Assembly (NCBI RefSeq): GCF_033153115.1
Contig: NW_026889765.1
Coordinates: 11,222,001-11,286,000, forward strand
Length of the DNA stretch: 64,000 bases
Direction of reading: 5' to 3'
From: Saccostrea echinata
Lineage: Eukaryota
The position numbers were made by a program, and so were the translations under genes. Positions 25,501 to 64,000 of the stretch are shown here, in pieces; position 1 is the stretch's first letter; each line of letters begins with the position of its first letter. The notes under the pieces are model-generated. The model saw only the letters and a program-made list of their open reading frames with translations. It was not told the origin of the DNA and did no database searches.

Positions 25501-28500
25501 AGAGGGCAAGTAAAGTAACATGACATAAACTCTAGCAGAACTCCCAGAGGGCAGGTAAAGTAACATGACATAAACTCTAGTAGAACTCCCAGAGGGCAGG
25601 TAAAGTAACATGACATAAACTCTAGCCGAACTCCCAGAGAGCAGGTAAAGTAACAGACACAAACTATAGAAGAACTTCCAGAGGGCAGGTAAAGTAACAT
25701 GACAAGCTCTAGCCGAACTCCCAGAGGGCAGGTAAAGTAACATGACAAACTCTAGCCAAACTCCCGGAGGGCAAGTAAAGTAACATGACAAACTCTAGCC
25801 GAACTCCCAGAGGGCAGGTAAAGTAACATGACATAAACTCTAGTAGAACTTCCAGAGGGCAGGTAAAGTAACATGACAAACTCTAGCCGAACTCCCAGAG
25901 GGCAGGTAAAGTAATATGACATAACTCTAGTAGAACTCCCAGAGGGCAGGTAAAGTAACATGACATAACTCTAGTAGAACTCCCAGAGGGCAGGTAAAGT
26001 AACATGACAAACTCTAGTCGAACTCCCAGAGGGCAGGTAAAGTAACAGACACAAACTATAGAAGAACTCCCAGAGGGCAGGTAAACTAACATGACAAACT
26101 CTAGCCGAACTCCCAGAGGGCAGGTAAAGTAACATGACAAACTCTAGCCGAACTCCCGAAGGGCAAGTAAAGTAACATGACAAACTCTAGCCGAACTCCC
26201 AGAGGGCAGGTAAAGTAACATGACATAAACTCTAGTAGAACTTCCAAAGGGTAGGTAAAGTAACATGACATAAACTCTAGTAGAACTTCCAAAGGGCAGG
26301 TAAAGTAACATGACATAAACTCTAGTAGAACTTCCAAAGGGCAGGTAAAGTAACATGACATAAACTCTAGTAGAACTCCCAGAGGGCAGGTTAAAAAAAA
26401 CATGTCATAAACTCTGGCCGAACTCTCAGAGGGCAGGTAAAAAAAACGTCATAAACTCTAGCCGAACTCCCAGAGGGCAGGTAAAAAACATGTCATAAAC
26501 TCTAGCCGAACTCTCAGAGGGCAGGTAAAATTTTGATAAATGACTATTACGTGAAAAGCTTTACAAGAATTATTCCATTCTTTCTCTTTTCCAGTGTGGT
26601 GGGGACGAGCTCTCTGCGACGTGTTGCACAAGTCTCACGAATACATCCTCATCTAAAGTTTGAGAGCATTGTAAGTGCCAGATATATTGTATGTCTTCTC
26701 TTCTCCAAGGGGCGGGTTTAAAAAATACTAGTAATTGATTTAAAGAAAAATAATTAATAATGATGCTTAAACATGTTTTAATATAGTTTAAACAGGCACA
26801 GTCCTTTAATTTTAAAGTTATATATTGGGGGGGGGGGGATATGTGGTTTAGTTTGAATATGGTCAAACACATTTCTTTGTATTGTATACCTAAATCTTTG
26901 CACGGAACCCCTAACCATGTTATTTTTAAAATTCAAAAGTATACCGTAATTCTAGTTTTATATAATTAAAACTACTTGTTTAAATGTGTATTTATTTGCT
27001 ATTCTTTGTTAATAAGAGAGGGAGTTTGAACTCTCGCCTTGAGAAGCTTGATGAAGGAGATAAATATGCTGCACTGATCCTAGCTGAGGCCGGACTCTCC
27101 AGAATGGGGTGGGAGAACAGACTGTCTGAGGTAAAAGATTGCCCTACTGGAGTAACAAATATTAATGTTGTATGTTAATCTGTGAAATATGTTGTTACTT
27201 TTCAAATAATTTATCTTCGGCAGTTGCATCTTGTGTCGGATTAAAAAAAGTAACAAGATTTTTTTCCTGAGACAGCTCTCCCATTTAACAATATGACTTA
27301 AAAGCAATTTTCTAGAATATTCATGTTTGTAAATAATCACGCTCACTTTGATAATTACAAATACTAATCAGGCCCGTAGAACGCCCCTTTTTCTGTTGTA
27401 TAGTATTTTGCTATATTGAATTTTCATTCAGATGCTGTTTACCTCCACCCCCACCCCATCCCCAACACACACTTTTTGTTGCTGTAAGGTCGAGCACATT
27501 ATCTAACAAAATTCCAGAATTTTGGCAGTTACGGATTATGTTAGGAAGTCGTCCCCCACCCCATTTTTTGGACAATTTATATTTTTTTTTTAGCTTGTCA
27601 GATTTTGGGAGGTTGAAACCCTCCCAACCCCCACCCCCACGTTTCAAACCGTTGCTATGGGCCTGCTAATAGAAACTTATCATAAGTTACATGTATATAT
27701 ATATATATTAATCTGTAGAGACTGGCAGATAGTGGATGCTTGTATGCAGTAAGCCAAGGAGCCATTGGGGTAGAATGCCGAGCAGACGACAAAGTAACGT
27801 TGTCTTTGCTGGACTCCATCGCTGATAGAGAGACAACACTGCAGTGTGTCGCAGAAAGGTCCTTTATTAGGAACTTGGTACATGTCTTTCTGATTGCTTA
27901 AAGTTGACTTTCTGACATTATTTATTTCGTATTTGTTCGAGATAAAATTAATTCTGATCAGAAATGTTTATTTGTTTTAGGGCGTAGGCTACAAGGCACC
28001 CGTGTGCGTTCACTGTGAAATCACACGTGATGAGGTATGGTTTGGTGATAGCACCATTTTTTTTTTCATTTAATGGAAGTACATAAGAATGAAAATTCTA
28101 GGATTATACATAACTCATTTTGACGATAAAAAAATCATTCTGAGAAAACACAAAATGGACTTTTCAGCATAATCTACGAACAACCTAAATATTGTAAACC
28201 AGCATTTCTTTATAAAGGACGAATCGGAATTTCGAAGTTTTTTATTAATAAAAAATACAAATTATATTGAATATCTCAATCATGCTTGCAATACAACAAA
28301 TCCTTCTGGACTAGACATTGTTTTATGTCTTTGAGCTATATATTCAACAGAAATGATAAGAAGCCAATATTATTATTTACAATCGGTAGGTACACACTTA
28401 TTTACAATTAGTAGGTACACTTTTATTTACAATCGGTAGATACATTTACGTGGTGCGGTTTACAGTCTGGACGGACATGAAACACAGGTACTGGACACAA

Positions 28501-29593
28501 GAGCTCTTCTCCACCCGGACGGACAGAGAACTGCGGTATGTCTTTATATAAACTATTCAACATTGTCAGAAACTACAAATAAATTATATTTCAGGTCATT
28601 GAAAACATTTCAGCAGACTTTTTAAAATTATATCTGACTTTACAAAGATTTTTGTTGTTGAAAATATGTTTCAATCCCCTAAATCCTGTAAATAGTGATC
28701 AATGTTATAAATCCTGTAAACAGTGATCATTCTCCTATTCCTGTATACAGTGATCGATCTCTCCTAAATCCTTTAAACAGTGATCAATCTCCTAAATCCT
28801 GTAAACAGTGATTAAGCTCCTAAATCCTGTAAACAGTGGTCGATCTCTCCTAAACCCTGTAAACTGTGATCAATCTTATAAATCCTGTAAACAAGATACG
28901 AATCTCGGAACAGGGAAAAGTTGTTGCTTGTTTCTATGGTAAAGATTTCTGAAATTTAATAAGAAATATTGACCTTTACAACAATTTTTTAAATAATTAT
29001 AAACATGAGACAATAATTTGATGTGTTATATTTCTTATATAACTTTTTAAGTAATTTAAATAATAAAATTGCCATCATTTTTGACAATTTCTTTATTTTC
29101 GAATAGCTTTAATCGTTTTTTTTTTTTTTTATTTTTTAGAGGTGATAATGGGGGGGGGGGGGGAGTGTTATACAAGATTACTATATAATGTTTCACAAAC
29201 GTGAACTTTTCATTGTTCGGTATAGAGTGGTTTAGTGTTTTTGCTTTTTATCAAATTTATTGAAAATTAGTACATGTACATACAATTTTTTGAGCATTTT
29301 TTTTAATTTAATTCAGTAGCTGATATATCACTAAAAAAAATTCATTAGATTTTTTAATACTTTCATTTTCTTTAAAGAAAGGGGAGCAGATGCCCGCTAA
29401 CAGTTCCTCCTTCATGTCGATAGCAGTGGGCAATACCGCCACGAGAGAGGAGATGTCTGTAGCTCAGCGTATAGGACTCAAACTGGCTGAAGAATTTCTA
29501 AAATCTAATGCCAAAGATGTATTGATGACCGCCAAAGTTTCCACCGAAAATTCTATACTGCAGGAGCGATCCCGGCGTGAGCTTGTGGCCTAG
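22203..29593 (+). CDS. HMBS: Porphobilinogen deaminase / hydroxymethylbilane synthase homologue, 363 aa, lacking the cofactor-binding Cys
   Basis: 11 phase-compatible exons: 22203-22244 ([14 protein letters not shown]), 23260-23332 (LAMIQTNTV), 24946-24995 ([14 protein letters not shown]), 25107-25240 ([20 protein letters not shown]), 25387-25464, 26595-26670 (VVGTSSLRR), 27017-27130 ([25 protein letters not shown]), 27719-27877 ([18 protein letters not shown]), 27981-28034 (GVGYKAPV), 28440-28535 (GAVYSLDG), 29378-29593. Total 1092 nt with no stop or frameshift. An upstream UTR exon is possible because an AG directly precedes the ATG. Confidence 0.93.
25437..26530 (+). repeat. Minisatellite of 25 x 43-46 bp built from the HMBS exon-5 3' end plus its splice donor
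   Basis: Unit AAACTCTAGCCGAACTCCCAGAGGGCAG|GTAAAGTAACATGAC(AT); the first copy encodes KTLAELPEG(S) of exon 5. Confidence 0.95.
27369..27665. mobile_element. Non-autonomous DNA transposon with 5-bp TSD (hAT5-like), HMBS intron 7
   Basis: CTAAT|CAGGCCCGTAG ... CTATGGGCCTG|CTAAT. Confidence 0.75.
28371..28446 (+). repeat. Triplicated splice-acceptor region of HMBS exon 10
   Basis: Three ~25-bp copies of ttatttacaat(cg/ta)gtag|(g/a)taca; the last AG (28438-28439) gives the in-frame exon. Confidence 0.8.
28678..28893. repeat. ~28-bp minisatellite, about 8 copies, HMBS intron 10
   Basis: Unit taaatcctgtaaacagtgatcaatctcc. Confidence 0.85.
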
Positions 29594-34095: not shown

Positions 34096-34799
34096 CTATA
34101 TACATAAATGTTTTTTTTTTTAAAGAATTTCATTGTTTAGCGTGTATGATTCTAGATCCTTTTATTGCGATGATGCTCCTGGTCACACAGGGTTTGATAC
34201 AATGCTATTTAATACATCTTTATACTCTATTGACCCTATATTTCCACTTAATCACCCGTGGTATAACACTGGCGACTGTACGAGTCTTTAATACTGATCA
34301 CGGGTCTCTTTGAATGAGAAGTGTAAATAGATTAATTTACTGGAACAATCACTTGCCCTATGGGTTAAACAAAAATAGCATTATAGCCCAGAATGACTTT
34401 TGAAANNNNNNNNNNNNNNNNNNNNNNNNNNNNNNNNNNNNNNNNNNNNNNNNNNNNNNNNNNNNNNNNNNNNNNNNNNNNNNNNNNNNNNNNNNNNNNN
34501 NNNNNNNNNNNNNNNNNNNNNNNNNNNNNNNNNNNNNNNNNNNNNNNNNNNNNNNNNNNNNNNNNNNNNNNNNNNNNNNNNNNNNNNNNNNNNNNNNNNN
34601 NNNNNNNNNNNNNNNNNNNNNNNNNNNNNNNNNNNNNNNNNNNNNNNNNNTATACCGGTATCATATCATGCCATCATACATAAAACAAATACACATAACT
34701 ATACATAATCATTCGAAAGACAATATTTGGGAATCCATAAATTTTAAATAGATTTATAAATATATTAAATGAATATTCAGGAAACCATATTTTTAGAAA

Positions 34800-63693: not shown

Positions 63694-64000
63694 ATAAGAT
63701 TTTTTTTTTTAAAGTTGCNNNNNNNNNNNNNNNNNNNNNNNNNNNNNNNNNNNNNNNNNNNNNNNNNNNNNNNNNNNNNNNNNNNNNNNNNNNNNNNNNN
63801 NNNNNNNNNNNNNNNNNNNNNNNNNNNNNNNNNNNNNNNNNNNNNNNNNNNNNNNNNNNNNNNNNNNNNNNNNNNNNNNNNNNNNNNNNNNNNNNNNNNN
63901 NNNNNNNNNNNNNNNNNNTAGAACAACCTCAGAAATATATAAGACTTACTGATATTTTAATGTCACCAATTATGATGTAAATCCTAAAATACAGTAACCT

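Follow-up and report, generated by a model that had tools for sequence, protein, structure and literature searches.

The 64,000-nucleotide stretch of the Saccostrea echinata genome analysed here (assembly GCF_033153115.1, contig NW_026889765.1, positions 11,222,001 to 11,286,000 of the forward strand; hereafter the window, in whose own numbering positions are given) contains an intact gene of hydroxymethylbilane synthase (HMBS, also known as porphobilinogen deaminase or PBGD) in which the cysteine that anchors the dipyrromethane cofactor has been replaced by tyrosine. HMBS is known from textbooks for assembling its own primer, which it carries covalently bound to a single invariant cysteine. 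The substitution is real, and neither chance nor sequencing error accounts for it. Sequence relationships identify the gene as the Saccostrea orthologue of an old HMBS/PBGD paralogue of Ostreida, which we refer to as the Tyr-type gene, and this paralogue is almost certainly functional and conserved.

The cofactor loop is encoded by exon 9. Its tyrosine codon, TAC, lies at 27990-27992 (Y246, equivalent to human C261 and E. coli C242; human HMBS numbering, obtained by adding 15 to that of the window protein, is used for conserved residues below) and is followed directly by a lysine codon, AAG, at 27993-27995 (K247, equivalent to human S262). The initial annotation had reported the tyrosine, had noted that neighbouring residues differ as well, and had judged a sequencing error unlikely. 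All three points hold: the translation agrees with an alignment to the homologous exon of a canonical HMBS gene of the same assembly (on contig C57), which gives, position by position, E to G, G to V, an unchanged G, C to Y, S to K and V to A, and the identical 12-residue motif is present in proteins of four further oyster species. Among 280 fetched HMBS sequences with the motif context, 254 carry Cys at the C261 position, 26 carry Tyr and none carries another residue; every one of the 26 comes from an oyster or from Pinctada. The motif G-Y-K occurs in all seven Tyr-type sequences aligned (five genera), its Tyr and Lys being invariant throughout the clade, and EGGC occurs in the 40 other metazoan HMBS of the alignment (GGGC in Sinanodonta), including the canonical copies of S. 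cucullata, O. edulis, C. gigas, C. virginica and P. imbricata. The possibility of an alternative GGC-containing exon had also been raised; a regular-expression search of all six frames of the window found no EGGC-type exon, the known exon 9 being the sole match. When the whole genome was searched with PF03900, the C57 exon was the only match.

HMBS exons are found at two loci only in the assembly, the window gene (on contig C16) and C57. This is the outcome of the Pfam search, and the exon-8 protein search agrees with it, since across the genome exon 8 matches C16 and C57 and no third locus. The homologue of exon 9, at C57:473366-473419, is equal to it in length and phase and reads EGGCSVPVSAYTEVKDGK, with the canonical EGGCSVP. 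A search for a second, canonical GGC-containing HMBS in the same genome, as the initial annotation had proposed, is thus answered by an intact Cys-bearing gene, in keeping with its suggestion of a non-housekeeping paralogue in the window. Exon boundaries are common to the two copies, exon for exon, which indicates that the duplication was DNA-based and did not involve a retrocopy. The canonical gene spans C57:467001-474087 and has an open frame throughout its exons. It shares about 95% identity with S. cucullata P0158 and closes with a Lys/Glu-rich tail, which is absent from the Tyr-type copy.

To place the Tyr-type gene among its relatives, the full protein library was searched with exon 8. 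This retrieved P0003, a protein of 364 amino acids with the same 12-residue motif, whose cluster includes a protein of C. angulata as well as C. gigas XP_011425272. Used as the query of a word-index search, P0003 retrieved further proteins named 'porphobilinogen deaminase-like' from three oysters, each with the identical motif: C. virginica P0151 (88% identity to P0003), Saccostrea cucullata P0152 (83%) and Ostrea edulis P0153 (80%). The window protein itself is 95.9% identical to P0152 and 82% identical to XP_011425272. Two Tyr-type proteins are also found in Pinctada imbricata, where P0156 reads DVGYKVPVSVHT and P0020 reads DCGYKVPVSVLT. The deposited models of both begin with unrelated sequence in place of the RVGSRKSQ exon, so that their first exons look mispredicted, and this explains why these entries seem to lack R26 and S28. 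P0020 further shows a 16-residue insertion past the cofactor loop, which looks like a retained intron, and P0156 a DNDKVMS repeat ahead of the last domain. The genes of both lie on one 65-Mb chromosome record.

In a maximum likelihood tree (LG+C20+F+G4 with posterior mean site frequencies, PMSF; support given as ultrafast bootstrap/SH-aLRT), the seven Tyr-type sequences group together as a clade (100/99), and so do, separately from them, the canonical oyster and Pinctada sequences (98/99). Within the Tyr-type clade, S. cucullata P0152 is the sister of the window protein (100/100), and the canonical copies from the same species fall elsewhere. The Tyr-type clade joins a bivalve polytomy through long stem branches (0.42, then 0.88 substitutions per site to the oysters), and its crown is slow. 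Given that the clade spans oysters and Pinctada, both the duplication and the Cys-to-Tyr change are older than the oyster/pearl-oyster split.

The Tyr-type gene occupies 22203-29593 of the plus strand, a span of 7.4 kb. It has 11 exons totalling 1092 nt, which encode 363 amino acids and contain one stop, the terminal one; all ten introns have GT-AG borders, and GC content is 0.50 in exons versus 0.32 in introns. This model was built by pairing open-frame pieces of the window with the C57 pieces and then reading the junctions, and it bears out the numbering of exon 9 in the initial annotation. Queries for database searches were single exons or proteins already in the databases, for instance P0152. 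The parts of the gene, all on the plus strand, are as follows.

22203..22244, plus strand: exon 1, with the start codon ATG at 22203 and the equivalents of R26 and S28; 22244 is followed by a GT donor; first exons of the C57 copy and of P0152 match
23260..23332, plus strand: exon 2, with the Q34 equivalent; AG/GT borders, frame running on into exon 3
24946..24995, plus strand: exon 3, beginning of the lid loop, TIGDKIQD; from junction reading
25107..25240, plus strand: exon 4, HSMKDCP, with the catalytic Asp codon at 25191-25193 (D84, human D99); PF01379 at 46.7 bits for the exon alone
25387..25464, plus strand: exon 5; its 3' end and donor form the unit of the intron-5 array
25437..26529, plus strand: intron-5 tandem array, 45 bp x 24.7 copies; Tandem Repeats Finder score 1608, 90% matches
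26595..26670, plus strand: exon 6, GTSSLRR, with the equivalents of S146, S147, R149 and R150; from junction reading and alignment
27017..27130, plus strand: exon 7, RGSLNSR...LSRMGW, with the equivalents of R167, R173 and R195, and Ser at N169; PF01379 at 38.8 bits for the exon alone
27719..27877, plus strand: exon 8, SQGAIGVE with the Q217 equivalent, ending AERSFIRNL at 27877; genome matches here (100%) and on C57 (59%), no others
27981..28034, plus strand: exon 9, the remodelled cofactor loop; AG acceptor 27979-27980, GT donor 28035-28036
28440..28535, plus strand: exon 10; from junction reading
29378..29593, plus strand: exon 11, with the stop codon TAG at 29591-29593; from junction reading

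The intron-5 array takes up most of that intron, and its unit consists of the last ~28 bases of exon 5, the GT donor and the bases after it. The true exon-5 donor is in effect the first of about 25 near-identical donors, and splicing from a donor further along would introduce in-frame stops into the mRNA. Intron 10 holds a tandem array as well (28671-28893), whose periods of 28, 58 and 86 bp are nested and whose matches amount to 79-87%.

Between the same species of Ostreidae, Tyr-type pairs are 79-88% identical and canonical pairs 85-89%; between the two Saccostrea species the values are 95.9% and about 95%, respectively. Of the 97 alignment columns conserved at 95% or more in the 40 canonical HMBS, 65 show no change in any of the seven Tyr-type proteins. 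Clade-wide substitutions are found in the cofactor loop (E258G/D, G259V/C, C261Y, S262K) and in the active-site lid loop (L64Q/M, K74S/T, L76V). The window protein has R26, S28, Q34, D61, F77, K98, D99, S146, S147, R149, R150, R167, R173, R195, Q217 and G218, and Ser at N169, which turns RGN into RGS. The initial annotation had described the reading frame as otherwise intact, with RGS and most of these arginine, serine, glutamine, lysine and aspartate equivalents in place, and all that it listed is indeed seen. The residues that bind the pyrrole acetate and propionate groups (R26, S28, Q34, K98, S146, S147, R149, R150, R167, R173, R195 and Q217) are retained in the oyster members of the clade, and the catalytic Asp (human D99, E. 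coli D84) is invariant in the alignment. These comparisons indicate that the Tyr-type gene has since evolved under a constraint about as strong as that on the housekeeping copy.

Domains and predicted structure were examined in the orthologue P0152. It scores 252.7 bits with PF01379 and 40.5 bits with PF03900. A search of PDB sequences returns human HMBS chains (E = 6e-94), identity to the human enzyme being about 47%. The AlphaFold2 model of P0152 has a predicted local distance difference test score (pLDDT) of 88.7 and a predicted template-modelling score (pTM) of 0.89, with low confidence in the lid loop only, as is customary for HMBS. In a Foldseek search with this model the top 32 matches are all HMBS, with template-modelling (TM) scores of 0.74-0.96 (0.82-0.96 for human HMBS). 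Domains, sequence matches and model together show that the Tyr-type protein keeps the complete three-domain HMBS fold, whose active-site cleft lies between domains 1 and 2 and receives a loop from domain 3.

Expression of the paralogue could be followed in C. gigas, where the full open reading frame of 364 amino acids is found on dozens of assembled contigs, each just 1.2-2.0 kb long. Set against the 7.4 kb and ten introns of the window gene, contigs of this length must represent spliced transcripts, and the C. gigas orthologue is therefore transcribed and spliced. A young pseudogene, or an error of assembly or sequencing, would account for the loss of the cysteine itself and for nothing more. 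Neutral sequence would not hold an open frame and this degree of identity across genera, and the pseudogene reading is refuted by the open 363-codon frame with its ten canonical introns at the positions of the paralogue, by the identical motif of the other oysters and the G-Y-K of Pinctada, by a constraint near that of the canonical copy and by the support for the clade. The spliced C. gigas transcripts and the strong GC contrast between exons and introns point the same way, and the probability left to such an explanation is negligible.

Recoding of the transcript would be another way of saving the cysteine. A-to-I RNA editing of TAC to TGC in some transcripts would make the protein a conditionally canonical enzyme; ADAR editing occurs in molluscs, and a single A-to-G change at the second codon base would suffice to yield Cys. 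However, some 20 transcript-derived C. gigas proteins all have Tyr (assembled contigs drop rare variants, so that low-level editing could escape), the clade-wide S262K and G259V are beyond repair by editing, and no inverted repeat pairing with exon 9 is present within 400 nt on either side of it. We therefore regard editing as extremely improbable.

A third possibility is that ordinary HMBS chemistry has been rescued by attachment of the dipyrromethane to another cysteine. The initial annotation had pointed to two new Cys downstream of the tyrosine, and these are indeed encoded, at 28005-28007 (C251) and 28014-28016 (C254), five and eight residues past Y246; both are present in all five oyster sequences. 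Their proposed role as alternative anchors fares less well. Both Pinctada Tyr-type copies have Ser and Thr at these positions, and a Cys at +5 is common beside C261 itself, in Mya, Argopecten, Ylistrum, Lottia and the canonical P. imbricata protein. Moreover, in the model the residues fall in the beta-strand after the loop (E250-256) and not in the loop that enters the cleft. Such a rescue is accordingly very unlikely, and the invariant Tyr and its adjacent Lys seem to be better candidates for an anchor than the downstream Cys.

Several published studies of mollusc shell colour bear on the function of the Tyr-type gene. In C. gigas, a gene called 'CgPBGD' (LOC105326792) was knocked down by feeding of double-stranded RNA, which lowered its transcript by 97%, and new shell was whiter and less red and yellow (Hu et al. 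2021, PMC8201132). We translated by hand the five CgPBGD primers of that study (Table 2; RNA interference and quantitative PCR), and all five encode peptides of P0003, for example LITAKVST; four of the five peptides fall in stretches in which the aligned canonical sequences of other oysters differ. The primers thus identify the target as the Cys-less paralogue XP_011425272 and not the canonical XP_011444315. The latter was not assayed in the study, so the phenotype cannot be assigned to housekeeping PBGD activity. In Pinctada margaritifera, four PBGD transcripts are under-expressed in a red, uroporphyrin-bearing morph (Stenger et al. 2021, PMC7998362). Table 1 of the same paper lists Y206, Y31 and Y108 opposite human C261, Tyr being carried by PBGD_A, B and D, without comment; its authors nevertheless judge PBGD_A probably active, and PBGD_C is tabulated with R26H and Q34L. 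A later pool-seq paper of the same authors found red-specific single-nucleotide polymorphisms around five PBGD genes of P. margaritifera (2022, PMC9923487). Uroporphyrin I has been reported in the shell of C. gigas and the tissue that forms it (Bonnard et al. 2020, PMC7376061), and two divergent PBGD transcripts in the mantle of Clanculus (Williams et al. 2017, PMC5723588). The link to shell pigment that the initial annotation had advanced as a possibility therefore has published support in relatives, namely the C. gigas knock-down and the colour-linked PBGDs of P. margaritifera, and we consider a role in shell porphyrin pigmentation reasonably probable.

The reading that we favour starts from a DNA-level duplication of canonical HMBS before the oyster/pearl-oyster split, after which the cofactor loop was remodelled from EGGCS to x-x-G-Y-K and part of the lid loop changed. 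The Tyr-type protein would still bind porphobilinogen (PBG) or oligopyrroles in the same cleft and, in this scheme, would most likely still catalyse pyrrole condensation. We prefer retained condensation because R26, Q34, R167 and the catalytic Asp are held as tightly as in the housekeeping enzyme. The usual thioether to the dipyrromethane primer would be impossible; the anchor might be absent, with a non-covalent primer, or might be the phenol of the invariant Tyr or the amine of the neighbouring Lys. An attack of the Tyr phenolate or the Lys amine on the azafulvene electrophile is chemically plausible, and a Tyr acting as a transient, aryl-ether-type nucleophile may be likened to the Tyr of trans-sialidases. 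A Tyr or Lys link would be more labile than the thioether and might alter the released product. The protein would then act in mantle porphyrin metabolism that feeds shell pigments, leaving haem housekeeping to the C57 copy. The N-terminus (MEQKIIRVG...) reads without a signal peptide, which makes a secreted shell-matrix role unlikely. Taken as a whole, that is as an old functional paralogue with retained condensation and a role in mantle porphyrins, this reading has about an even chance of being correct; that the protein is still catalytic is, to judge from its residues, a closely balanced matter, if anything slightly short of even. Its more specific form, an HMBS-type polymerase free of the thioether, with Tyr or Lys as a labile anchor or with a non-covalent primer, which would supply or shape the pool of oligopyrroles behind the shell uroporphyrins of oysters and pearl oysters, is put forward tentatively and may well prove wrong.

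Several points weigh against our reading. According to reviews the Cys is conserved as the covalent attachment point and also pulls the growing chain through the site, a 2026 review still calls it conserved, and the field at large holds its thioether to be essential and universal. The long stem branches, together with the remodelling of the lid loop, demonstrate a change of function following the duplication. Knock-down whitens the shell in C. gigas, yet in P. margaritifera it is the red morph, rich in uroporphyrin, that shows low expression. Either result would be compatible with a non-catalytic binder as well. The authors of the RNA interference study (PMC8201132), besides, did not exclude that the canonical copy was silenced too.

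The main alternative is a pseudo-enzyme, in which catalysis was lost together with the Cys and the protein became a cytosolic binder, buffer or regulator of PBG, hydroxymethylbilane or uroporphyrinogen in the mantle. Ligand held in the old cleft would then steer the amount of uroporphyrinogen I formed spontaneously. The residue regarded as indispensable to holoenzyme formation is gone, a bulky Tyr, together with G259V and the Lys, could occupy the place of cofactor ring C1 or alter its lining, and the arginines that bind the acidic side chains, which a binder would need too, are kept. The opposite signs of expression and colour in C. gigas and P. margaritifera are easier to square with a buffer, and the divergent Pinctada P0020 has more changes near the active site, to which the R26H and Q34L of PBGD_C may be added. 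On the other hand, the catalytic Asp and the substrate and elongation residues R26, Q34 and R167 are fully kept in all oysters throughout the history of the clade, the rate of change is near that of the housekeeping enzyme, and the knock-down phenotype parallels that of ALAS, a step that supplies flux. A pseudo-enzyme is thus a serious possibility, but one that we hold to be rather doubtful, and condensation retained on a remodelled loop remains our preferred reading.

Whichever of the two applies, a paralogue with Tyr in place of Cys that has been under constraint since before the oyster/pearl-oyster split amounts to a natural experiment on the indispensability of the thioether. Should a thioether-free polymerase prove true, the Cys, held universal in the HMBS family, would have its first known exception. 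What was silenced as 'PBGD' in C. gigas, and what was tied to colour as 'PBGDs' in P. margaritifera, is the Cys-less paralogue rather than the housekeeping copy, and the published work needs to be reread in this light; explanations of shell colour modelled on porphyria, in particular, rest on an assumed normal activity of these proteins. A marker or target specific to the paralogue would also be of practical value, since the colour of shells and pearls is a commercial trait. Our literature searches yielded no paper in which the Cys-less proteins are set apart as a clade of their own or the loss of the thioether is considered, none that pairs 'porphobilinogen deaminase' with 'pseudoenzyme', and nothing usable on C242 or C261 mutants (Cys to Ser or Ala). 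The Cys-to-Tyr substitution has already been printed once, uninterpreted (Stenger et al. 2021), and the window gene adds a further orthologue to a gene that databases and papers already contain. The conserved form of HMBS without its anchoring Cys has not previously been described as such.

Outside the HMBS gene, the window contains runs of N at 13598-13731, 20137-20293, 34406-34650 and 63719-63918 (736 bases in total). On the minus strand, three successive open pieces at 1506-2951 match VWD, C8 and TIL domains and are exons of a gene for a mucin/zonadhesin-like secreted protein, which extends past the left end of the window.

Four known systems can be set beside the Tyr-type gene of S. echinata. 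One is that of Clanculus, a snail whose pigment-producing mantle yielded two divergent PBGD transcripts (PBGD-1 and PBGD-2); every gastropod HMBS that was fetched carries the canonical Cys. The PBGDs of Pinctada (P. margaritifera PBGD_A-D, P. imbricata P0156 and P0020) are a second. Those of P. margaritifera are linked to colour, with Tyr at the C261 position in PBGD_A, B and D, and the P. imbricata copies have the G-Y-K motif and are sister to the oyster Tyr-type genes. They differ in being only 45-49% identical to the window protein, in having no downstream Cys and in being multiplied, with four to five gene fragments reported, and low expression goes with the red morph in P. margaritifera. 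The C. gigas gene CgPBGD (LOC105326792, XP_011425272) belongs to another genus but is the direct orthologue of the window gene, with the same motif and in the same clade; in the original study it was taken as the usual enzyme of the pathway, and the absence of the Cys and the existence of the canonical paralogue went unmentioned. Finally, canonical HMBS (EC 2.5.1.61; human structures 3ECR, 7AAJ and 7CCX, and E. coli HemC 1PDA) shares with the Tyr-type protein its fold, Pfam domains, catalytic Asp and carboxylate-binding residues and, in the copy of the same genome, the exon structure. The two differ in the cofactor loop, E-G-G-C-S in the canonical enzyme versus x-x-G-Y-K in the Tyr-type protein, and in the lid, where positions 64, 74 and 76 have changed in the latter.

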